Part shown: positions 1 to 18,980 of the stretch, one piece after another
Numbering within the stretch: position 1 is the stretch's first letter
How the letters are laid out: the number at the start of each line of letters is the position of its first letter
Origin: Oopsacas minuta
Lineage: Eukaryota; Animalia; Porifera
Assembly (NCBI GenBank): GCA_024704765.1
Contig: JAKMXF010000119.1
Span: 1-18,980 of the forward strand
Direction: 5' to 3'
DNA length: 18,980 nt
Notes under the pieces: model-generated
Database searches by the model: none
Told to the model about the DNA's origin: nothing
The model's input: only the letters and a program-made list of their open reading frames with translations
Translations under genes and position numbers: made by a program

Positions 1-131
1 TGTCCAGACTAATTGCCATCCATGGTCCAGAATTTGAATAGAGTGCCATTGCCTTAGTGTATAGAATGCTATGATCTAGCTAACAGTCCCAAAATATATC
101 CATTAGATAAATAGTACATCAATTAGGAATT

Positions 132-565
132 ATAAATATTAGAAAGAAGTGTTTTTAATGTTTCTATGCTGGGAATTCTTACATGATCAGAAAGAGAATT
201 CCACAAACGCGGGTTAGCACTTGAAAACGTACGTTCACTACACTTCTTCAACTTATCTCTAGGTTTACGTAGTAAATTTGTTTGTGTGGTAGACCTTAGA
301 CTGAGTACTTAAAGAAGTGTTATCAGTTGACTGAAGTATGTCGGATAAAGCCCATAAACTATTTTTAATGTGATGAGCAGTATTTTGTAGTCTACTCTAA
401 CTCTGACAGGTAACCAATGTAAATTTTTAAGTATTGGAGTTATGTGGTCTCACTTCTTCGCTCCAGAAATTAAACGAGCTGCAGCATTTTGTATACTCTA
501 GTATATTCAGTTCTTGTGATGTAGAGAATTACAGTAATCTATTCGACTGTAACCGTTGGCGTATA
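132..565 (-). mobile_element. Decayed L2/CR1-clade LINE, reverse transcriptase C-terminal fragment
   Basis: Minus-strand translation gives SRIDYCNSL...QNAAARLISGAKK*DHITPILKNLHWLPVRVRVDYKILL...RTFSSANPRLWNSL, the typical CR1/L2 ORF2 tail, with stops. Only the SRIDYCNSL..QNAAARL part survives in the duplicate (about 16629-16730). Confidence 0.85.
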
Positions 566-1442
566 GTTTAGGGGGGAAGGGGTTGAACTTGACTAAATAC
601 ATATATCGAATATGCCGAATCCGAATTTCATACTTTTGAATTAATCATATGAAATTTATTTGTTGTTTTATGAATATCAAATAAACAAATAGTTGAAATC
701 TTAAAATCGAGCTTCTAAGTGCCAAGTCCCATGCAAACATAAAGTGTTCGCAAGCGCGCAGCGGGAGCAAGCGATGCGGATCATTTCGATATAATAATTC
801 AATTTGATTATTCGACCTTTTTCAGTCCTAGAATCTATGAAAATGCATATTTGTAATCCTTTGTGTACAATTAAATACTTCGTTGGGATATTGCTGGGCC
901 TGGATATAACAACCACATTAAAGTAAATATACATATGAGTTTTATAATTTTCGCTCCCCTTGGAATTTCAAGAACTCTTGGCCCATCTGTAACTCAAGAA
1001 ATAGCCAACTTTTGTATTACAAGTTTTTCATATTTTGCATAATACTAACTATAGGTCATTTTATATATATTTTCACTTTGAGATGAAAGATTCCATATTT
1101 AACGTTCTACAAGGAATCTAAGAATGACATTCTTTACCAAATGCATATTCACTAGACACATCTTTTGACACATTCCTGAAATATGTTAACATATAATGGT
1201 TGCTCATGTATTACTCAACAAATATGCAACACATTTTTCGGGAAAAAATCGCCATTCTTGCTAGAGTTTGTTATATCGGCTAATGTATCAATTCTCAATA
1301 GTCCGAATTCCACAATTGCTGTTAGTTAATAAATTCTATATTTACAGCAGACTCCGCTTAACAGGGTTACATTGGGACCATTTTGACCCAATTAACCGAA
1401 ATATAGGTGTTGACGCGATTAACCGGTGCTCTAGTGTATAGT

Positions 1443-1449
1443 TATATAA
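1443..1449 (+). promoter_or_regulatory. Candidate TATA box upstream of gene A (also 17404-17410 for A3)
   Basis: TATATAA about 60 bp upstream of the ATG, conserved in the duplicate and absent upstream of A2. Weak evidence in AT-rich DNA. Confidence 0.25.
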
Positions 1450-1507
1450 TTATGTTTAGTAATCTAATTTCTTAATTTTCTTTGAAAAAGTTGATTTAAC
1501 AATTAGC

Positions 1508-2986
1508 ATGGGAACTACACAGTCTATTCCAGCACATAGAAGTTTTATACTTATTGGGGAATTGGCTAATGGTAAAAGCACTTTGGGAAATCTAATACTA
1601 GGAGGAGGAGTTAATGCTCCATTTGATATACATAAGATATACATGCCAGCCTGTCATACAAAACATACTCAAACATCAGAAACTACTATTAAATCTAGCT
1701 TGATATACGGTGACAAATTTCCAGAGGAAGACACTCGGATTCAAGTTGTTGATCAACCTGGCTTAGGTGATCCCAAATATAGTTTGGATAAATACAGCCA
1801 TTTCCTAATCAGATGCTTGAAGGAATCGAATGCTGAGATTTCTACAACATTCATAATTACCATCAAAATGAGTTTAATATATTTTACAGAAAAATCAGCT
1901 TCAGAACTGTTTGATTTAGCATATTTTATGTCAAAGTTTAACTACAACTTCTTCAGTAATGCTATTATTGTATTTACACACATTGATGAAATTCAACTGG
2001 GAGAGGGAATTGAATTGAATACTGACACATTGAATACAAAACTAATGGAAATCATGACTCGAAAAAGTTGGAAGCAATTATCCGAACTTCTACAGCGAGT
2101 TAATAACAGATATATGTTCGTAAATGCAATGAACAGAGAACCTGGTTATCGTGAAGAGATTCTACAGAAACTGTTTGAACTTTCTAAACCTGTTGTGAAG
2201 GCTACATTCCATGGAAGTACAGGCTTTACATGTGAAGACTTGCAGACACTATTCAAAGATAACAGCTGTGATATATCACATCCCAAATGTCACCTACAGT
2301 GTACTTTTTGTGATTTTCAATGCACACAGGACAATCCTAATTTGGAATCATTTATCTCTAGAGTAAGACAATTAACACACGGTATTTCTGTGATTGTACT
2401 CCTAATAAATCTTAATAATGATCTGAGCGAGCAGTCATTGAGGTTAATAACTGGATTGCCTGAATATTATAAGCTAGGAGGAGATGGAGAGAGTGAATTT
2501 TGGAAATACACATTTCTCTTGTTTAAGTTTGAAGCAGAACAGGAGGATCCAATTGGATATATTCATAAACAATGTGAGAGATACGGGTGTATCAGAGAAT
2601 TATATGAGAAATCTGGAAAGAGAGCTACATGGGTGACTGAGCATATGACACAAGATCAATGTATACACAAGATTCTAGAAATATCACAAATTATCAAGCA
2701 GAATAATGAAGGGAGAGAATACATAGATGTAGAGATAGTTAAGAAAATGGAGGAGAAGATAAATAAGTTGAGAGCCAAGCCTCCTCCAAAGGGTGCTGAT
2801 GCTCCAGTGTCCTATACAAAGATATTTGCATATGTTGCATTGAATGTGCTCGTATTAGGGGTATCAGCATCTATGGGGAATCCACAACCTATGACGAAAT
2901 ATTTGTATTCACCTCCTCCACCACCTCCGAGGAATATTGATGACAATGAATTCAAGGAATTCATCGAACATTTCAATAAAGATTAA
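1508..2986 (+). CDS. Gene A: AIG1/GIMAP-like GTPase with tandem degenerate AIG1 domain, N-myristoylation motif and C-terminal hydrophobic anchor (492 aa)
   Basis: MGTTQS (G2/S6); G1 GELANGKST; G3 DQPG; G4 FTHID; RYMFVN. A second domain after LSKPV has a dead P-loop (HGSTGFTC) but AIG1-like strands GISVIVLLI and FWKYTFLLF. Hydrophobic IFAYVALNVLVLGVSA at about aa 439-454; PPPPPP at aa 469-474. Confidence 0.85.
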   Translation: MGTTQSIPAHRSFILIGELANGKSTLGNLILGGGVNAPFDIHKIYMPACHTKHTQTSETTIKSSLIYGDKFPEEDTRIQVVDQPGLGDPKYSLDKYSHFLIRCLKESNAEISTTFIITIKMSLIYFTEKSASELFDLAYFMSKFNYNFFSNAIIVFTHIDEIQLGEGIELNTDTLNTKLMEIMTRKSWKQLSELLQRVNNRYMFVNAMNREPGYREEILQKLFELSKPVVKATFHGSTGFTCEDLQTLFKDNSCDISHPKCHLQCTFCDFQCTQDNPNLESFISRVRQLTHGISVIVLLINLNNDLSEQSLRLITGLPEYYKLGGDGESEFWKYTFLLFKFEAEQEDPIGYIHKQCERYGCIRELYEKSGKRATWVTEHMTQDQCIHKILEISQIIKQNNEGREYIDVEIVKKMEEKINKLRAKPPPKGADAPVSYTKIFAYVALNVLVLGVSASMGNPQPMTKYLYSPPPPPPRNIDDNEFKEFIEHFNKD

Positions 2987-3952
2987 TTATTTTACATATT
3001 TTTTCCCAATGTGCATTCATGAATTTTATTTTATATTATTTAGCCTAACAGGTATATTACTATTGACTAATAATTATTCCTTACTTGTAGTACTTGTGTA
3101 TAATCTGTCACTACACGGAAATGGGTATTATTACTTATATATTGAACATTTCTCTTAATGTAATTGTATTGAATATTATTCTCAATTAAGTTTTTAGGAA
3201 ACATTTCAAATTTTCTATGCTATCTAGTATTTTGTGTAAGTCTGAACTTAGTACATTTGGTGCGTTCATTCCATCGGTCGTTTATGACTTTATATTGTAT
3301 AATACTCACCAAACTATTTGTATATTTTTTCATATGAAGACATTTCCTGCCTTTTTAGGTCAAAATACTTTGATAGTGCTACACATTGATTACATAGTTT
3401 CTTTAGTTGGTGTTTGCTTTATTGAGTGTCGAGATTTTCCCAAATACTGTATTCATTTTACAGTAGTGTCGATGTTCCACAATTCGCTCCACGGCATTTT
3501 CACTATTTCAGAGGTATCCAGCGTTTCTATTCCTCAATGAGGTAGATTGCTTTGACAAACTACCTCACATTCGCATGATTTATCGGGAGATGCCGGTACA
3601 TCATCTATGTAAGATATACGTGGATAAACCGTCTCAGAGATGCCAATTCTATAGGCCTTTTGACTCTCATGGATAAATGTCAAAGAATTTGAGTGATCTC
3701 ACGATTGAATACTAAATTCTGATAAATTGTAGCCGTTCTCACAAGTACTCATGGATTCTTGAGATATCAGATTGGCATCTATATCTATCTATGTAGAATT
3801 GTAGATGTATCTCAGAATCTTCCGATAATAACATAGGGACTGATTTAATGGAATTCCATATATGAATTTGTGAAGTTGATTATCAATGAGTACCTATGTA
3901 TAGGGATTTACATGGCATTGTTATGATTGATCAGTTAGTACGAGTTTTCAAC

Positions 3953-4261: not shown

Positions 4262-5578
4262 ATGCAGGTAGATAGGAACTTAATATTAATCGGGGCTGTA
4301 AACTGTGGTAAGAGTGTCCTTACAGATTTTATAATCGGACAAGAAGAAGTGAGAAGTATTGGAGGTAGAGAAGTGACAATTTTGTCTCAAGGCAAACCAA
4401 GTTCTATTCTAAGAATATTTGAAACTACTCCAGAGAATAGAAAAGATGTTTGTTTAGAAATTGTGAGAAATCAAACAGTTGATACTTGTTTTGTTGTTGT
4501 TATTGATGTGACTAAAAGTGATGAGTTTGTAAACGAGTTAGTCAGATTGAAGGAATTGTCTGAGCAGTTAGCTGAGTGGTCTTATTCGTTGTTTGGTAAT
4601 TGTTTTGTTGTATTTACTCATATTGATGAGTTGGTTGATGGAGTTGATAAGCAACAGTTTGTAGACAGAGAATTCGGAGATATATTATGTCTAGTGGATA
4701 GGAGATGTGTATTCATTAACTCTACTCTTAGGACACAGGAGAATAGGAATAGGTTGTTAGATGAATTGATACATCTGTCTAAACCTGTTTTGAAGATTCT
4801 TTGTTATGGAGACATTCAATTTCCTGGCGAAATGATACAACAAATTATTGAAATTCCTGACAATTCCTCACTCCTGGAAGAATTAGGACTGCGTCTCTAT
4901 TTTCATCCAGACCTAAGTAAGGGTGATAAATATCGCGAGTTTGTGTTAGAGCCACAGGTATCAAGCATAATTGGACTGCCTGATGAGGTCGGTAGAGGAG
5001 TTACTGTTATCGTTATTCTTGTTACGTTGACTGAAGCATACTGTAAAGATTATGAAATTTTGATTAATCGCTTACCAAGTACACATGGATTAGATGTAAA
5101 CTCTGAGAAATACTTTTGGGACAGGGTGGTTGTTCTCTTCCGAATAATCGGAGGAGACTTCAAGGAAATTTTCGAACACACAATTCATAATAATCCTGCA
5201 GTCATGGCCCTGATGATACGAACAGGTTGGAGGTATACTCACATATCCCCTATCGTCCGCGACAATGAATTTCTTCAAAAATTCATTCCATTATGTCAAC
5301 AGGTTAAAAGAGAAAATAATTTCAGACAGTTTATTGGAGGGAAAAATATCATAGAAAGAGCAACACGAGATATTTCATTGAGAAAGAAGGAATCATCAAT
5401 AGTGAGTAGGATATACAAATTTGTGTGTACACATCCAAGAAAGATATTTACTACACTACTTGCCTTGGGAATACTTCCATTCGTATACAGGTTAGCTTAT
5501 GGATCAGCAAAGATGCTCTTCAAACGGTTAGTAATACGCAATTTCATGAACCCAGCAGTTAATTTCAATTATTGTTGA
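4262..5578 (+). CDS. Gene B: divergent tandem AIG1/GIMAP-like protein, probable pseudo-GTPase with C-terminal hydrophobic segment (438 aa)
   Basis: G1 GAVNCGKS; G3 position reads IFETTPE (no DxxG); G4 FTHID; RRCVFIN; the same LSKPV junction as gene A. Second domain GVTVIVILV / YFWDRVVVLF / GWRYTHI parallels gene A. Hydrophobic IFTTLLALGILPFVY at about aa 395-409. Confidence 0.8.
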   Translation: MQVDRNLILIGAVNCGKSVLTDFIIGQEEVRSIGGREVTILSQGKPSSILRIFETTPENRKDVCLEIVRNQTVDTCFVVVIDVTKSDEFVNELVRLKELSEQLAEWSYSLFGNCFVVFTHIDELVDGVDKQQFVDREFGDILCLVDRRCVFINSTLRTQENRNRLLDELIHLSKPVLKILCYGDIQFPGEMIQQIIEIPDNSSLLEELGLRLYFHPDLSKGDKYREFVLEPQVSSIIGLPDEVGRGVTVIVILVTLTEAYCKDYEILINRLPSTHGLDVNSEKYFWDRVVVLFRIIGGDFKEIFEHTIHNNPAVMALMIRTGWRYTHISPIVRDNEFLQKFIPLCQQVKRENNFRQFIGGKNIIERATRDISLRKKESSIVSRIYKFVCTHPRKIFTTLLALGILPFVYRLAYGSAKMLFKRLVIRNFMNPAVNFNYC

Positions 5579-6934: not shown

Positions 6935-6974
6935 TACTGTAATCATGTAATCAAAAGTTGATTTAACAATTAGC

Positions 6975-8174
6975 ATGGGAACTACACAGTCTATTCCAGC
7001 AAATAGAAGTTTTGTACTTATTGGGAAATTAGCTAATGGTAAAAGCACTTTGGGAAATCTAATACTAGGAGGAGGAGTTAATACTCCATTTGATATACAT
7101 AAGACATACATGCCAGCCTGTCATACAAAACATACTCAAACATCAGAAACTACTATTAAATCTAGCTTGATATACGGTGACAAATTTCCAGAGGAAGACA
7201 CTCGGATTCAAGTTGTTGATCAACCTGGCTTAGGTGATCCCAAATATAGTTTGGATAAATACAGCCATTTCCTAATCAGATGCTTGAAGGAATCGAATGC
7301 TGAGATTTCTACAACATTCATAATTACCATCAAAATGAGTTCCATGTATTTTACAGAAAAATCAGCTTCAGAACTGTTTGATTTAGCATATTTTATGTCA
7401 AAGTTTAACTACAACTTCTTCAGTAATGCTATTATTGTATTTACACACATTGATGAAATTCAACTGGGAGAGGGAATTGAATTGAATACTGACACATTGA
7501 ATACAAAACTAATGGAAATCATGACTCGAAAAAGTTGGAAGCAATTATCCGAACTTCTACAGCGAGTTAATAACAGATATATGTTCGTAAATGCAATGAA
7601 CAGAGAACCTGGTTATCGTGAAGAGATTCTACAGAAACTGTTTGAACTTTCTAAACCTGTTGTGAAGGCTACATTCCATGGAAGTACAGGCTTTACATGT
7701 GAAGACTTACAGACACTATTCAAAGATAACAGCTGTGATATATCACATCCCAAATGTCACCTACAGTGTACTTTTTGTGATTTTCAATGCACACAGGACA
7801 ATCCTAATTTGGAATCATTTGTCTCTAGAGTAAGACAATTAACACACGGTATTTCTGTGATTGTACTCCTAATAAATCTTAATAATGATCAGAGCGAGCA
7901 GTCATTGAGGTTAATAACTGGATTGCCTGAATATTATAAGCTAGGAGGAGATGGAGAGAGTGAATTTTGGAAATACACATTTCTCTTGTTCAAGTTTGAA
8001 GTAGAACAGGAGGATCCAATTGGATATATTCATAAACAATGTGAGAGATACGGGTGTATCAGAGAATTATATGAGAAATCTGGAAAGAGAGCTACATGGG
8101 TGACTGAACACATGACACGAGATCAATGTATACACAAGATTCTAGAAATATCACAAATTATTAAGCAGGAATAA
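6975..8174 (+). CDS. Copy A2: AIG1/GIMAP-like GTPase, truncated at 399 aa by a +1 frameshift; restored frame runs to 8370
   Basis: About 11 aa differences from gene A over 399 aa. An extra G at 8168-8169 (AAGCAGGAATAA versus AAGCAGAATAAT) creates TAA 8172-8174. Removing it gives NNEGRECIDIEIV...SYTKILTNIALGVFFYYIFCQICSCYRPN* ending at 8370. Confidence 0.8.
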   Translation: MGTTQSIPANRSFVLIGKLANGKSTLGNLILGGGVNTPFDIHKTYMPACHTKHTQTSETTIKSSLIYGDKFPEEDTRIQVVDQPGLGDPKYSLDKYSHFLIRCLKESNAEISTTFIITIKMSSMYFTEKSASELFDLAYFMSKFNYNFFSNAIIVFTHIDEIQLGEGIELNTDTLNTKLMEIMTRKSWKQLSELLQRVNNRYMFVNAMNREPGYREEILQKLFELSKPVVKATFHGSTGFTCEDLQTLFKDNSCDISHPKCHLQCTFCDFQCTQDNPNLESFVSRVRQLTHGISVIVLLINLNNDQSEQSLRLITGLPEYYKLGGDGESEFWKYTFLLFKFEVEQEDPIGYIHKQCERYGCIRELYEKSGKRATWVTEHMTRDQCIHKILEISQIIKQE

Positions 8175-8979
8175 TGAAGGGAGAGAATGCATAGATATAG
8201 AAATTGTTACGAAGATGGAGGATAAGATTAGTGAGTTAAGAGCCAAACATCCTCCAAAGGGTGCTGATGCTCCAGGCATGTCCTATACAAAGATATTGAC
8301 AAATATTGCATTAGGCGTATTTTTTTATTACATTTTTTGTCAAATATGCAGTTGTTACCGACCAAATTGAATATTTGGCAGTGCCAAATTGAGCAAGGTT
8401 ATTCTTATACAAAATTTGAAATTAAATGTTATGGTTTACTAACTAACATATTTTGAAAATTTCAAAGGTATGTTTTATGGTCTGCTAAAATAAATGATGT
8501 TGTATCTAGATTAAGAAATAATGTAGTACACGTATGTCTAGAAACTCTATAAATTTTCATGAATTAGTTGGCCAGTTGATTAAAATGGTAGATAGCTAGT
8601 TGATTGAGGTGGTTTTTACATTACTATCTGTTCTCGCATACGATAAAGTGTCTGTGACACCTCGAGTTGCATTTAACTTGCTTTCGTTTGCACTAGCAAG
8701 TCTTGGTCCGGCAGTTATCTTGCATTGACATGAGACGCACGGTGTAACCCCTGCCTCTACAGTGTTCAATCCAGGATTTACTTTTGGAGGAAGGTTGTCA
8801 TTATGGGCTACGCTATAGATCTCTGACTATTCTTTCGTTGTATTTATCCCATGCAAATATTTTGTGTAATTAAGATACTTCTTACTTATAAACAATCATA
8901 ATTTCAATATGAATATTTTAGGAAAATCTGTGTTAATTAACAATCCACAAGATTTAAGCTTGAACCTCACAATACTATT

Positions 8980-10256
8980 CTATTCTACGGGTCTTTGCCC
9001 TTCATAATGATCAACAAATTTCTCCAACATATCATTCGTTAGGAGATCAAGGCCTTCAACGCATATGCGCATCGTATGTTCAAGCGTGCCCTCGCCCATC
9101 TGCTGCGGAGTCTTGTTATTATTCGTTTCATACTGCTAAATGTACGTTCAACAGTGGCTGTTGTTACTAGTAAAGCCTGTAGGCCTCTACTATTGCAGCT
9201 AAATTTTATAAGTTTGGAAATGCAATCGAAATGTCTCCGCTATTGATCAATTTCGATAGTACATCCTGCAAAGATCTATTCTTGAATTGCTTCTAAATTA
9301 TCCGCCGAAACATTTTCCATTCTGCTTCAGTTTCCTCTCCATTAATGTCTGGTTGTGACACCATCATCATCACCAAAGCTGACATGTTATATAACACTAC
9401 ATTGATTTATTAGCATCTACATCTTTTCCATACCATAGTTAGTGATAGTTGAAGTTCGGTTTTAGGAGATAGCGAGGGTCCGGAACGGACATAGAAGAGA
9501 CTAGATAAGTGCACTCCCTTCTTTTTCGGATATTGTCAATCACACTTTGTATATATGGCCGATACACTGTCTGAAGAAATTGAATTTTTTCCTCTTCCAT
9601 GATCACAATTTGTTTTCCACCAAGCTGAGTATCATCTGTAAAAACGAAAGAATGGTTCTTGAACCAGGTGGTGCTGTTTACTATTTCTTTAGTCTCTGTT
9701 AGTCTTTCAGTGGTACTATTGACCATTAATTGCACAGCTCCAAAGTCAATCGCTTTCCCCTGTAAAATCCTTGTAACTTGACAACTGTATCGAGTACATC
9801 TGATAGTATATAGATACAAAGTACAGTTTTGTATTTTGACAAGAGTGTCGCAATTCCATGAGCTTCTGCATCACAAGTTTCATCATAAATCTCTTCAAAT
9901 GTGCGTACCAAGCTGGGATACTCCGTCGCACAACACACACGGCTCTTTCACGTGCGAGCAATAGAGTATTAAAAGGTTTTACCATTTTAATCTCAGGAGA
10001 CTGGAGTTCCGCTTGGGTCAGTGAAAGTTTTTCTGCTTTCTTGGGAGAATAATGGAACGCTTTCCAGATTTTTAACATTGTAACTAAACTCTCATTATTT
10101 GTACATGTTCTCCACAAGTATTGACAGCAGCAAGTTGAAATTTATGGGACCTGTAGTGGATATAAATTGCACTTCTTGCAAGTAGTAATCTCAGACGCCT
10201 TAGAATACCACTTATATGGCCAGACATTGTATTAGTACCATCATTGCCAAGGACGG
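8980..10256 (-). mobile_element. Decayed hAT transposase relic, ZNF862/ZMYM1-like
   Basis: Fragments GNDGTNTMSG, YIHYRSHKFQLAA (CxxH mutated), YSPKKAEKL, EAHGIATLL, and a dimerisation domain VTTATVERTFSSMKRIITRLRSR...EHTMRICVEG. Many stops and frameshifts. A possible terminal CAGTGTTC lies at 8760. Confidence 0.85.
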
Positions 10257-10269
10257 CTCTCTCTCTCTC
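10257..10269 (+). repeat. (CT)6C microsatellite at the junction of two TE relics
   Basis: CTCTCTCTCTCTC lies where hAT similarity ends and integrase-like similarity begins. Confidence 0.8.
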
Positions 10270-10890
10270 ATGGATATCGTTAGGGTAGAGAAGCTTGTCA
10301 GTGCCGCAGGGTGTTAAGTTAGTGTAGTTGAATGCTGGCAGATTGTTCCATGTGCAGTCCCTATCTGGAAATCCCCTCCATCCAGTACACATCCGTAACG
10401 GTACTAATGAGGCTGTTGGGACCAATGCTAGCCCTGGGTAAGGAATGGCATCCTCACATTATCCCCTTTCAATAGTCTTGCTACGTTTCATACTAGACTG
10501 TATCATGTCAGCTCCTTGCTTTCTGAGTGCTCATCAGCTTCTTTGACGGAGCTTCTCAGTATTTCGCGCTTTCCTGCAGTACTCATCACGTGCACAGAAG
10601 TACTGTACTGGAGTCTTACCGTACACGTCTAGTCGGTCCAGGCAGTCAGCATGAAATGGATCCAGTTTACAATGGCTGCAACTCACTGTACAGTTGTCAT
10701 CATCTATTACACAGACTAGACAGGGAGGATGTTAATATAAGGTGTAACTTGTCTGCAGGGGTACAGTAAGGTTGTAGGAATCGTCATCAAGATCGTCGTT
10801 GTGGCTCATGAAATACTCGTACACCCCTGTCACGTCCCCCATGACTGAGCTCGTGATGGGCTGCCACTAACGTATCCCACAGGTCTTCGG
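10262..10890 (-). mobile_element. Decayed KRBA2/SCAND3-like (Ginger-type) integrase relic with PHD-like finger, catalytic core missing
   Basis: EDLWDTLVAAHHELSHGGRDR (HHCC N-terminal half), then CLVC..CSHC..FHADC..FC..C, ALRKQGADMIQSS, KGDNVRMP and FQIGTAHG. Several frameshifts and stops. Confidence 0.6.
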
Positions 10891-11349
10891 ATATATGAAT
10901 AAACTGATGGAAAATATATGTAAATTACACACATTCTTTACAATCTGAGCATTAAAATAGTAAGAAAAGACCGTTTCGACTATAATAAGCAGTGGTGGTC
11001 TGAGTATCAGCCACTGCCTTTTGGCTTATACTTTAAGTGATATTAATCATTTGTCTAACGACTAATCATTTTTTATCAGGTAGCAAAGTGACCCAGAGGC
11101 CTTAGCTACTCTCCCAGTTTCACATTTTTGAGCACTGTCTATTCGGTTCTCTCGTCACATTACATTAGCATTCGGAACTCAAATTGAGATCACCAAACAC
11201 AACAATTAATTAGTACTCAAGAAGCATATATGTCATCAGGGGGATCGGTAGTATGTGGGAGTCACCACTACTACTGGGTAGAAGGGCGGACGTGTATGAG
11301 TAAGAATTTTCAGTTACGACCAGTAGGGTGCCCTAACCGGATGCTGGTA

Positions 11350-11835
11350 ATATTCGGTTGGAGGAAAACATCATGCTCAGTTATTTCTGTATTTTCTAAT
11401 ACCGAGATTGATGATTCTAATTTAGTGACGGCCTCTTTGATATTTTCTAGAACAATATTGGATTCAAATAACTCAGGATTAGTGTAGTTTAGAATATCAC
11501 CAATTAAGATTTCAATTTGTCGTATATCGGTTAATCGACTGAGACTCAAAGGAACTTGGTGTTGGCAACAAACTGCTGAAACTGTTAAATCTGAATGAAT
11601 TGATAAGGTAGATAGAATATGTATAGACTCATTGGCGAATTCCAGCTGTATGATCTCTAAGGTATTGCTAGAGGAGTACCAGGTCGCCCAATCTTGGTTA
11701 AGGTGTAACTCTGGCAACTTAATTTAAGATCCTCAAAATTCCCCAAACCGAACCGTAATGAATCTTGTTGATCTTGTATAATGCTATCATGAAGAGCTTT
11801 AGCAAAGTTTTCCTCTTCCTTAGATTCAAGATTTA
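11350..11835 (-). pseudogene. Relic of a THAP/P-element transposase linker region
   Basis: NLESKEEENFAKALHDSI...LSIHSDLTVSA...RLTDIRQIEILI parallels SLDDKEERRIQEAY...SISIDVNFYCKA...NDIRSLENII in the plus-strand element. Frameshifted. Confidence 0.55.
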
Positions 11836-13405: not shown

Positions 13406-15098
13406 TTAATTTTTCATGTTCAATATCCTATAAACGAACACCAGTTTAGCCGCCTTCTCAATTCCAAGTCGGTTGCGAGTTTTTGAGTGTATATATCCAA
13501 ATGTAGAAAATATACGTTCAATTCCTGCACTTGAAGCAATTGCGGTGAGAAGTTGTTCAGCAACTTTAGTAATATCTTTCCCCAACGTTCCATGCATTGA
13601 TGCCCACCAGCAAGCTGGCGTAATATTATCAACTACATCGTCACTAAACATGTAGGATTTGAAAGGATCATATCCTGCTTTGAACTGCAAGACAGTCGCC
13701 ATTGCATTTGGACAATGCTGATGAATATATTCCATTGCATCGGTAGCTTCTTCTCAGTGAGTTTTCTTCCTCTATACCTTGGGTCTATTAAGTTCGCAGA
13801 ATAGTGTGCTGGAGAAATAGCTTGGGCAGCTCTTTCGTCTACTTTTCTTAGTACATGTGCCGGTTGCTGTGAACTTAGAAGATCCTCATAAAGTGTTTTC
13901 CATACTTCAACTGTATCGCTAATTATAGCATTTTCCCTTTGAATTCTATCTAGAGCAACTGAAATTGGTTTTAATCTAATAAAGAGATCTTCAGCGTTAC
14001 GTTTGATAGAATAATTCTTAACTTTATTACCAATGTTCGAATTTATCTCATCACGATATTCCTCACAGACCTGTACAAGGATATGCCAGTTAGAAATATA
14101 GCTATTCAAACAGTCCGTCAAAGTATTCCATCTAATTTCATGTGGGATAACAAGAGAATTACCACCAGCTTGCTTGTGTCTAGCTGCAGGTAGATGTGTA
14201 TGTCTAAAATATTTGACTATCTGGACAACTTGTTCTTTTATCCCAGTAATCTGTACATCTTGTGCTAATAGGTTCAACAAATGAGCAGAGCATCCGTATG
14301 TCAATATTTCATTCGGTATCTTTTTTTGTAAATCTCTTCTCATTTTTGCCATATTGGCTGCGTTGTCAGTTACAACGTTACGTACATGACATCTAAAATT
14401 TATCTCACAGGAAGTAATAGCATCTGCAGCAAGTTCTGCCAGATATTCTGATGTGTGACTATGTCCAGAGGTATCAATTGTCTCAGTAAGGAAAGTCTCT
14501 CCTTTGTCAGTTGTAACACTCACACACACGACAGGTTCATTATGTACGTTACTCCATCCATCCAGTGATAAGGAGACTGTCTTATCCTCCAGGGTTTTTC
14601 TGCATGTATCCAAGAGAGATCCTTGTACATTATTTAATAGTTTATTCCCTATATCATGGCGATTTGGTGGTATATAACCTGGCCGTAGCATCTTTATTAG
14701 TTTCATAAACTCGGGGTGTTCAACAGCTATAAAAGGCGTGTTAGTTGCGTAAATATAACGAGCAATTTGGAGATCCAGTAATTCTGCCTCTGATTTCGAA
14801 GTCTTCATGACATATTCACCGATATGAGTAATCCTAGGTCTTTTTTCTTTAGCAAAAAGACTTGTATCAGGCACTTCTCCACATAATGCAGTTGATCTGG
14901 CTACTAAATCAATTGATTCATTTTCAGCTATTATGGGATGGTCTTGCATGCTGCATGAAGAATAATGTTGCTTAAGGCGGTTGACCACCCCTGCATCTCC
15001 TTTTTGCAAACTTTACACCTTGCTTCCCAGCCAGCAACTCCTTCTGTCGTATACCGTTCGAAGTGGACCCATATATCATCTTGTTTCCTACCTGCCAT
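13406..15098 (-). pseudogene. hAT transposase (BED finger, DDE, dimerisation domain), about 564 aa after restoring two 1-bp deletions
   Basis: MAGRKQDDIWVHF..RCKVCKKEMQG(fs near 14990)VVNRLKQHYSSC; LSLDGWSN; VVTDNAANM; GCSAHLLNL; EIRWN; LTE(fs near 13753)EEATDAMEY; SSAGIERIFS. No in-frame stops in the restored frame. Confidence 0.93.
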
Positions 15099-16492: not shown

Positions 16493-18980
16493 TGTCCAGA
16501 CTAATTGCCATCCATGGTCCAGAATTTGAATAGAGTGCCATTGCCTTAGTGTATAGAATGCTATGATCTAGCTAACAGTCCCAAAATATATGCATTAGAT
16601 AAATAGTACATCAATTATGAATTATACATCCAGAAATTAAACGAGCTGCAGCATTTTGTATACTCTAGTATAGTCAGTTCTTGTGATGTAGAGAATTACA
16701 GTAATCTATTCGACTGTAACCGTTGGCGTGTAGTTTAGGGGGGAAGGGGTTGAACTTGACTAAATACATATATCGAATATGCCGAATCCGAATTTCATAC
16801 TTTTGAATTAATCATATGAAATTTATTTGTTGTTTTATGAATATCAAGTAAACAAATAGTTGAAATCTTAAAATCGAGGCTCGAAGTGCAAAGTCCCATG
16901 CAAACATAAAGTGGGATTTCAAGAACTCTTCGCCCATCTGTAACCCAAGAAAAAGCCAACTTTTGTATCACAATTTTTTCATATTTTGTATAATACTAAC
17001 AATAGGTCATTTTATATATTCACTTTGAGATGAAAGATTCCATATTTAACATTCTATAAGGGATCTAAGAATGACATTCTTTACCAAATGCATATTCACT
17101 AGACACATCTTTTGACACATTCCTGAAATATTTTAACATATAATGGTTGCTCATTTATTACTCAACAAATATGCAATACATTTTCGGGAAAAAATCGCCA
17201 TTCTTGCCATATCGAACTCACCTAGAGTTTGTTATATCGGCTAACGTATCAATTCTCAATAGTCCGAATTCCGCGATTGCTGTTAGTTAATAAATTATAT
17301 ATTTACAGCAGACTCCGCTTAACAGGGTTACATCGGGACCATTTTGACCCAATTAACCAAAATATAGGTGTTGGCCCGATTAACCGGTGCTCTAGTGTAT
17401 AGTTATATAATTATGTTTAGTAATCTAATTTCTTAATTTTCTTTGAAAAAGTTGATTTAACAATTAGCATGGGAACTACACAGTCTATTCCAGCAAATAG
17501 AAGTTTTATACTTATTGGGCAATTAGCTAATGGTAAAAGCACTTTAGGAAATCTAATACTAGGAGGAGGAGTGAATACTCCATTCAAAATACACGCACAC
17601 CTGAAAAGATCATGTTACACAAGAGGAACTCAAACTTCAGAAACAATGATCAAATCTAGCCTAATCTACGGTAACAAATTTCCAGAGGAAGATATTCGGA
17701 TTCAAGTTGTTGATCAACCTGGTTTAGGTGATCCCAGATATAGTTTAGAAAGATATAGCCAATTTCTAATCACATGCTTGAAGGAATCGAATGCTGAGAT
17801 TTCTACAACATTCATAATTACTATCAAAATAAGCTCTGTTAAACTAGATAACGAAACAGTTTCGGCTCTATTTGATCTGTCATATTTATTGGGCCAATTC
17901 CATTACAACTTCTTCAGTAATGCTATTATTGTTTTCACTCATATCGATGAGATACGGTTGAGAGATGGTAACAAAAACATAGACCAAATAATCACAGATA
18001 TTACAGAGAATGAACAGTGGATTCGTTTAACAGAAATCCTACAGCGAGTTAATAACAGATATATGTGTGTAAATGCAATGAACAGAGAACCTGGTTATCG
18101 TGAAGAGATTCTACAGAAACTGTTTGAACTTTCTAAACCTGTTTTCCAGTAGCGTCGGTGTCCGACAATTCGTTCCACGGCATTTTCACTATTTCATAGT
18201 AAACCCCAGGCTTGCCGTAAGGATAAAATCCCATCCATATTCATATCCAGACCTTTTGGACGTGGAAATTCATAGATATTGATTTTTTCTAAAGCCTGTT
18301 GGTGTTGGGTAGACGTAGATGCTCTAAGCCTGGGGCATAGACTCATTGCTACATGCTTCTTGGTGGACTTCCAGTTTCAGTGTTTGATACAGAGGGAGGC
18401 CCTGGGTTATCCCCCACCTGAATTGATAATGAATATACTTTTTGCATTATTTGAAATGGGTATATGGTACTTGGCCTGATCCTCCAGCAAAAGTGTCTCT
18501 ATCATACCCTGAATGTGCTCATGTCGCTCTTGTATATCTATTTTCATGAGGTCAAATTGTACCACACAAAGGTTATGGAAGATTATTCGCACCAGAGGTA
18601 CCTAGCATTTCTATTCCTCAATGAGGTAGATTGCTTTGACAAACTACCTCACATTCGCATGATTTATCGGGAGATGCCGGTAAATCATCTATGTAAGATA
18701 TACGTGGATAAACCGTCCCAGAGATGCCAATTCTCTAGGCCTTTTGACTCTCATGGATAAATGTCAAAGAATTTGAGTGATCTCACGATTGAATACTAAA
18801 TTCTGATAAATTGTAGCCGTTCTTACAAGCACTCATGGATTCTTGAGATATCAGATTGGCATCTATATCTATCTATTAGAGTTGTAGATGTATCTCAGAA
18901 TCTTCCGATAATAACATAGGGACTGATTTAATGGAATTCCATATATGAATTTGTGAAGTTGATTATCAATGAGTACCTAT
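16493..18980 (+). repeat. Segmental duplication, copy 2 (partner 1-3897)
   Basis: See blocks under copy 1. This copy lacks 135-461, 747-960 and 2195-3457, and has an extra 398 bp (18197-18594) plus a 14-bp extra near 17208-17221. Confidence 0.95.
17469..18152 (+). CDS. Copy A3: single-domain myristoylated AIG1/GIMAP-like GTPase (227 aa)
   Basis: MGTTQS, GQLANGKST, DQPG and FTHID are intact. It ends LSKPVFQ*, with the last codons and stop supplied by sequence homologous to 3458-3466. Confidence 0.75.
   Translation: MGTTQSIPANRSFILIGQLANGKSTLGNLILGGGVNTPFKIHAHLKRSCYTRGTQTSETMIKSSLIYGNKFPEEDIRIQVVDQPGLGDPRYSLERYSQFLITCLKESNAEISTTFIITIKISSVKLDNETVSALFDLSYLLGQFHYNFFSNAIIVFTHIDEIRLRDGNKNIDQIITDITENEQWIRLTEILQRVNNRYMCVNAMNREPGYREEILQKLFELSKPVFQ

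Follow-up and report, generated by a model that had tools for sequence, protein, structure and literature searches.

Among the vertebrate GIMAP GTPases, GIMAP1, 2 and 5 carry C-terminal hydrophobic anchors. GIMAP8 contains three GTPase domains (PMC8201404), and some AIG genes of snails encode two AIG1 domains together with transmembrane and coiled-coil parts (PMC7053062). According to PMC8066113, GIMAP7 dimerizes and, by means of an arginine finger, activates both itself and GIMAP2. In the demosponge Dysidea avara, microbial consortia elicit a response of GIMAP/IAN genes (PMC11229196), and the genome paper of Aphrocallistes vastus reported that single-exon AIG1 genes have expanded in tandem in glass sponges, the Oopsacas minuta counterpart being on scaffold 133 (PMC10282587). 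The genome paper of O. minuta itself (PMC10280926; project JAKMXF) does not mention AIG1, GIMAP or GTPases. Outside this family, the Irga6-type immunity GTPases are myristoylated at Gly2, act on membranes and are linked to defense (PMC4774019, PMC3042988).

We analyzed a stretch of 18,980 nucleotides of O. minuta (Hexactinellida), referred to here as the window, which is AT-rich eukaryotic DNA with a GC content of 32-44%, none of it flagged as resembling human sequence. Gene A is a single-exon ORF of 492 codons plus stop at 1508..2986 (+), and the same ORF is called in assembly GCA_024704765.1 (JAKMXF010000119.1). An ORF of this length in DNA of 35% GC, with full-length homologues, is far beyond chance. 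Its product is a two-domain member of the GIMAP/AIG1 superfamily, in which a live G domain is fused to a nucleotide-dead twin, preceded by an N-myristoylation signal and followed by a helix and a hydrophobic tail. The original prediction had proposed a myristoylated start, a GTPase, a dead GTPase, a membrane helix and a polyproline run in this ORF, and each of these five elements was located at the position given for it. The ATG of the MGTTQS start (1508..1525, + strand) is the first after an in-frame stop at 1460, 48 nt upstream. MGTTQS conforms to the N-myristoylation consensus, with Gly2 and Ser6, and matches the PROSITE pattern G-{EDRKHPFYW}-x2-[STAGCN]-{P}. An MG start is also present in 16 of 24 type-A relatives, and three more relatives contain an internal MG located 14-19 residues ahead of G1, the called start of these ORFs probably being too far upstream.

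The first half of the protein (aa 13-228; 1544..2191, + strand) is an AIG1/GIMAP-type G domain, as judged from its Pfam match, its motif residues and Foldseek. The Pfam AIG1 profile (PF04548) matched aa 13-232 with an E-value of 1.2e-17 and 64.4 bits, compared to a gathering cut-off of 27. The predicted G1, G3 and G4 motifs were found as GELANGKST (1556-1582, +), DQPG (1751-1762, +) and THID (1976-1987, +), and G2 is represented as well, by Thr51 (1658-1660, +). No variation was seen among 20 relatives at residues G17, G22, K23, T51, D82, G85, T157 and D160. At the level of sequence, therefore, every nucleotide-binding motif of the N-terminal G domain is intact. GIMAP7, 2, 5, 1 and 4 ranked first when the full-length model was used as a Foldseek query, and no IIGP/IRG Pfam match was obtained in gene A at E-values up to 1.

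The second half (pseudo-AIG1 domain, aa 229-400; 2192..2707, + strand) gave a different result at the profile level. Residues 230-492 of A alone matched nothing significantly in Pfam or NCBIfam; of the two halves of A itself, only the first is recognized by the AIG1 profile. Structure prediction nevertheless placed this region in the same family, and its assignment draws on the fold of the model, profile-profile comparison, motif loss and dN/dS. The full-length AlphaFold model (pLDDT 74, pTM 0.72) showed strands and helices at 229-400 in the order of a G domain, and long helices at 382-423, which bear on the definition of Lu et al. (2020), by which a GIMAP combines AIG1 with a neighboring coiled coil. 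Residues 229-425 modeled alone with 53 homologues reached a pLDDT of 88 and a pTM of 0.84. In Foldseek searches of the PDB with this second model, the top 19 entries were all GIMAP2, 1, 7 or 5 (TM 0.62-0.71), and an ESM Atlas search returned AIG1 clusters only (TM 0.62/0.65). VIA alignment to GIMAP2 covered 181 residues with a Z of 18.5 and an rmsd of 2.8 Å; the nine GIMAP entries scored Z values of 14.5-18.5, compared to 12.4 for Toc34 and about 11.5 for Ras-like proteins. The alignments to GIMAP7 and GIMAP1 extended to model residues 193-197. A long helix that follows the pseudo-domain (aa 401-425; 2708..2782, + strand) was assigned by DSSP in both models and corresponds to the C-terminal helices of GIMAPs.

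This assignment was further supported by profile comparisons. With deeper alignments, hhalign aligned the profiles of the G half and the second half in register, with strands matched to strands and RYxFVN to RYTWVS, at an E-value of 5.5e-6; with a shallow alignment of 16 sequences, the match between the two halves was weak (E 0.028, probability 1.8%). GIMAP7 was the sole significant match of the second-half profile among PDB sequences (E 1.4e-3), and the same profile recovered true AIG1 repeats in multi-AIG1 proteins of fish. Among 53 second-half modules, 13 gave a subthreshold match to Pfam AIG1, and AIG1 was the only family to recur. The P-loop-equivalent of the pseudo-domain in A, FHGSTGF (2207-2227, +), is without GK[ST], and the domain is without a G4 motif; neither GK[ST] nor the G4 motif ([NT][KRH]xD) occurred in any of the 53 homologous modules. 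These modules instead carry conserved motifs of their own, [HY]GNNxFxSS in place of the P-loop and PDL[ND]LF in place of G3, of which the versions in gene A, HGSTGFTCE and FCDFQ, are somewhat divergent. When the catalytic arginine of GIMAP7 was mapped onto the dead domain, the alignment register proved ambiguous. Judged by its modeled fold and its lost motifs, the second half of A is a pseudo-GTPase domain of GIMAP descent. The claim of a second AIG1-like fold with a destroyed P-loop was thus confirmed, and aa 230-400, on whose P-loop fold that claim depended, were modeled with a P-loop GTPase fold of the GIMAP type.

A Cys/His-rich loop lies at the switch-I-equivalent of the dead domain (window 2252-2332, aa 249-275) and contains five Cys and two His. 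Pfam placed a weak C2H2 zinc-finger match on this loop (E 0.08-0.13), which is not significant; we rejected a zinc-finger reading because the Cys and His residues of the loop are conserved in the closest relatives only.

Both halves of A share the G fold and C-terminal helices of the vertebrate GIMAPs (GIMAP2, 7, 1 and 5; PDB 2xtm, 3zjc, 3v70 and 6z3e). A differs from these proteins by its cis-fused dead domain and N-terminal myristoylation signal, and identity is just 14-20% between the single-exon sponge gene and its vertebrate counterparts. GIMAP8, the fish proteins P0042 and P0063 and the dual-AIG1 proteins of snails resemble A in having tandem AIG1-fold domains per chain, with transmembrane segments in some and tandem gene arrays. 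However, the repeats of the fish multi-AIG1 proteins reach the Pfam threshold and their G1 motif recurs along the chain, whereas in the family of A the second domain has its own motifs and is without G1 and G4; A therefore does not share the GIMAP8-like property of nucleotide motifs in every repeat. The glass-sponge cluster of PMC10282587 has in common with A the animal class, the single exon and the tandem clustering, and the relative P0023 is encoded on the O. minuta scaffold named there. That paper names the AIG1 domain only and describes no pseudo-domain, lipid signal, tails or architecture.

More distant proteins resemble A in single features. Irga6 shares the Gly2 signal, but belongs to the IIGP/IRG family and has a dynamin-like helical domain that is absent in A. 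In Der/EngA and p190RhoGAP, two G folds, or a live and a dead one, cooperate in one chain as proposed for A, but these families are unrelated to A, which is without a KH domain. We also considered a Der/EngA-type arrangement, since Foldseek produced long alignments to the full model; the rmsd of these alignments was about 18 Å, and therefore the domain arrangement differs. No publication was found that joins "AIG1 domain" with "myristoylation". We conclude that the full combination in A is undescribed in the literature found, and that the expansion of AIG1 genes in glass sponges is already published. The original prediction of a combination unlike described families was therefore correct in that no description was found, but went too far in that the architecture is a family trait inside GIMAP/AIG1, where multi-domain and tail-anchored forms are known.

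The C-terminal region of A begins with a short proline run, KPPPK (2777..2791, + strand), which precedes the hydrophobic segment and is kept in close relatives. The hydrophobic helix itself, at aa 439-457 (2822..2878, + strand), is a candidate membrane anchor of marginal strength. Membrane-span calls were based on a Kyte-Doolittle (KD) window and a rough sum of insertion energies, which gave for this helix a 19-residue mean of 1.87 and about +2.3, values that are marginal for a membrane span. The predicted helix was thus present where expected, but its hydrophobicity is marginal and is weaker still in the nine closest relatives (KD 0.75-1.55 at this position). PPPPPP follows at aa 469-474 (2912..2929, + strand); the prediction of this run was accurate, but the run is specific to copy A. 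Elsewhere, P5 and P3 occur in the two nearest relatives, one relative has a P6 placed N-terminally, and the others have none. The protein ends in an acidic motif, R-x-I-x-D-(E/N)-E-F-K-x-x-(I/L)-E (2930..2974, + strand), that is conserved among close relatives. The tail of A was modeled at a pLDDT below 50, and an Atlas search with aa 401-492 returned nothing above noise and no look-alike.

These properties bear on how A would be held at membranes. Possibly, though we consider it doubtful, A is a peripheral protein that binds the membrane by its myristoyl group alone, while the C-terminal stretch is amphipathic or a hairpin, or folds back on the G domains to form an autoinhibitory helix of the kind seen in GIMAP structures, and the proline run and acidic end face the cytosol for protein contacts. 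Such an arrangement is consistent with hydrophobicity that is marginal in A and below the usual threshold in the nine close relatives, with the proline runs that bracket the helix, and with the pattern of conservation: among close relatives the hydrophobic segment is the least conserved part (25% mean identity) and the last 18 residues are better conserved (58%), as would fit a cytosolic interaction motif. By contrast, the helix of gene A aligns to a strong transmembrane segment in an O. minuta paralogue that lies downstream of a B-type gene, clear C-terminal transmembrane tails are found in many family members, including many stand-alone dead modules (KD 2-3.7), and the 35 residues between the helix and the C-terminus of A are compatible with tail-anchor insertion, which calls for a single, sufficiently hydrophobic span no more than about 30-40 residues from the C-terminus. 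A true membrane span in copy A is plausible. If the helix does span the membrane, the proline run and acidic end would be non-cytosolic, away from the usual cytosolic proline-binding partners. One stand-alone module (P0043) ends in KKFPKCCIFF, in which CIFF resembles a CaaX prenylation signal. Taken with the MG starts and transmembrane tails, this CaaX-like end implies that the family overall is membrane-directed by interchangeable devices.

Four related ORFs, A, B, A2 and A3, are present in the window, all on the + strand. B (4262..5578, +) encodes 438 aa in the two-domain layout of A and keeps GxxxxGKS and THID and a hydrophobic end, but is without the G3 region and without an MG start. A2 (6953..8312, +) is a 97% copy of A 1486-2841 that begins 22 nt before the ATG. 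Its ORF (6975-8174, 399 aa) carries a 1-bp insertion at 8168 that causes the frame to end at 8174, and homology stops before the tail, which is missing. A2 is thus a recent broken duplicate. Self-comparison showed that window positions 1-3897 are duplicated at 16493-18980, where A3 (16912..18199, +) is an 86% copy of A from which A 2195-3455 is deleted. This deletion removes exactly the pseudo-domain and tail and leaves a G-domain ORF of 227 aa (17469-18152). Between A and A3, the coding region is made up of blocks, some with a dS of about 0.1 and others with a dS above 1, and the upstream flank is 97% identical. This mosaic pattern points to exchange with other paralogues, and A3 looks like a product of gene conversion.

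Because both sister copies in the window are broken, we considered that copy A might itself be silent or turning into a pseudogene, with only other family members functioning. The comparison of A with A2 is of little help here, since the two differ at only 18 sites and their dN/dS of 0.45 is uninformative. Yet the ORF of A runs unbroken through 492 codons, no motif is missing, and both the start and the C-terminal motif that are conserved in relatives are retained, which makes a silent copy A very improbable.

Gene A is one member of a fast-evolving glass-sponge family and not a one-off. A word-index search with A yielded 17 relatives, the majority of which are full length and share 49-59% identity. 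When the second half was used for an exhaustive profile search of 1.84 billion proteins, only 86 representatives were recovered. These representatives fall into proteins of ~500 aa laid out like A and B-type proteins of ~430 aa (groups 1 and 2), a protein with one live and two dead domains (P0019; group 3), many stand-alone dead modules of 190-335 aa (group 4), and, among the weaker matches, ordinary vertebrate AIG1 domains (group 5). In species-named records, the G plus pseudo-G family and the pseudo-module occur in Oopsacas minuta only, and further relatives are present in other assemblies. P0023 is the O. minuta protein LOD99_16054, encoded on scaffold 133 of the same assembly. The locus L002 is syntenic with that scaffold, with aconitase exons that are 75-89% identical and an AIG1 gene that is 44% identical; the family is thus evolving at a much higher rate than the sequence around it. 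L002 is tied to glass sponges through synteny with O. minuta alone.

The arrangement of these genes is also shared. Family genes sit in tandem arrays that turn over fast, as judged from the frameshifted A2, the truncated and mosaic A3, the divergence at L002 and the hAT remnants in the vicinity. B-type genes encode proteins of about 430 aa that often keep the P-loop, have the G3 region deleted and have no MG start. In two other assemblies, a B-type gene lies directly upstream of an A-type gene, with gaps of 128, 446 and about 820 bp, and on O. minuta scaffold 23 a B-type gene precedes a divergent A-like gene whose P-loop is dead. This adjacency suggests that B-type and A-type genes form a conserved gene pair. 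B-type genes precede A-type or A-like genes at L001 5884-9485, at L005 4578-7464 and 11426-13464, and at L006 7001-10264.

Selection was estimated from two related loci, where dN/dS was 0.20 in the G domain, 0.12 in the dead domain, 0.13 in the following helix (stalk) and 0.40 in the tail. By this measure, purifying selection constrains the dead domain no less strongly than the live one, and the dead domain is not decaying. Strongly purifying selection on both domains would also be expected if the family had a housekeeping role in membranes or organelles that is particular to glass sponges, for example in syncytial tissue, rather than a role in defense. The restriction of the pseudo-module to O. 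minuta among named records, with one other locus syntenic to that species, would fit a role of this kind, as would the result that the family members searched with Pfam contained no immune-type domains (death, CARD or TIR). We regard such a role as unlikely, because the tandem arrays contain broken and mosaic copies, because the family diverges far faster than the neighboring housekeeping gene, and because the AIG1 expansions of other invertebrates respond to microbes, as the literature comparison indicated.

Our main reading, to which we assign a probability of roughly 60%, is that A is a doubly membrane-held, GTP-switched GIMAP with the dead domain as its built-in partner, acting most likely in defense. 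A would be N-myristoylated, and its C-terminal hydrophobic segment would also hold it on the membrane. GTP binding by the live domain would switch the protein, and the dead domain would serve as a built-in, non-hydrolyzing surface for partnering, covalently linked and taking the place that a second subunit has in a GIMAP G-domain dimer. The dead domain may thereby control self-assembly, or pairing with neighboring family members such as B. The likeliest setting would be cell-autonomous defense or microbe discrimination; an immune role is the likeliest by analogy with the GIMAPs of vertebrates, mollusks and corals and from the birth-and-death evolution seen here. The original prediction had likewise suggested that a protein held at both ends could bridge or remodel membranes in innate immunity; double anchoring, bridging and the immune role are all inferences. 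A more elaborate version of this mechanism is a long shot. In it, the dead domain would sit on the G-interface of the live domain, so that the two form a pseudo-dimer within one molecule, and A would be a self-contained, doubly anchored GIMAP switch whose opening upon GTP binding tethers or remodels membranes. Competing trans partners would be supplied by the stand-alone, tail-anchored dead modules and by B-type neighbors, and these proteins together would form a modular GTPase/pseudo-GTPase defense system in one of the animal lineages that branched off earliest.

How GIMAPs act is unclear even in mammals, and the known facts suggest that G domains dimerize, with one partner activating or scaffolding the other. 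In A, this partnership is apparently hard-wired, with a live and a dead fold in one chain that is conserved under selection, and genes that encode the dead module separately, with a membrane anchor, also circulate. The family thus provides a simple natural case in which to study what a GIMAP dimer gains from its second subunit. It also indicates that elaborate GTPase/pseudo-GTPase families with predicted lipid and transmembrane anchors exist in sponges, which are early-branching animals. If the family proves microbe-responsive, it would add a defense gene family to glass sponges, in which immunity is almost unstudied.

Several further features were observed in the related loci and in the rest of the window. 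Two stand-alone dead modules of 268 aa each (P0044 and P0048) and a fragment (P0065) lie at L002 3964-7402 (-), on the opposite strand between two A-type genes, and the C-terminus of P0044 is a hydrophobic tail. At L005 1-4444, two NADAR-domain genes of about 730 aa immediately precede a B-A-A-B-A array. In P0015 (814 aa), ~290 extra N-terminal residues (within 1-300) replace the MG start, and this extension has no Pfam match. At the C-terminus of P0023, a glycine-rich hydrophobic segment is followed by a long tandem repeat resembling DTPLIPED/AQLISY. Overlapping ORFs in three frames occur at window 9439-10425 (-) and 11310-11717 (-), where GC rises up to 44%; they have no Pfam match, and this stretch may be a decayed gene or mobile element. 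A hAT transposase remnant lies at 13406-15009 (-), split over two overlapping ORFs and recognized by DUF659 (5.9e-16) and the hAT dimerization domain (1.4e-8).
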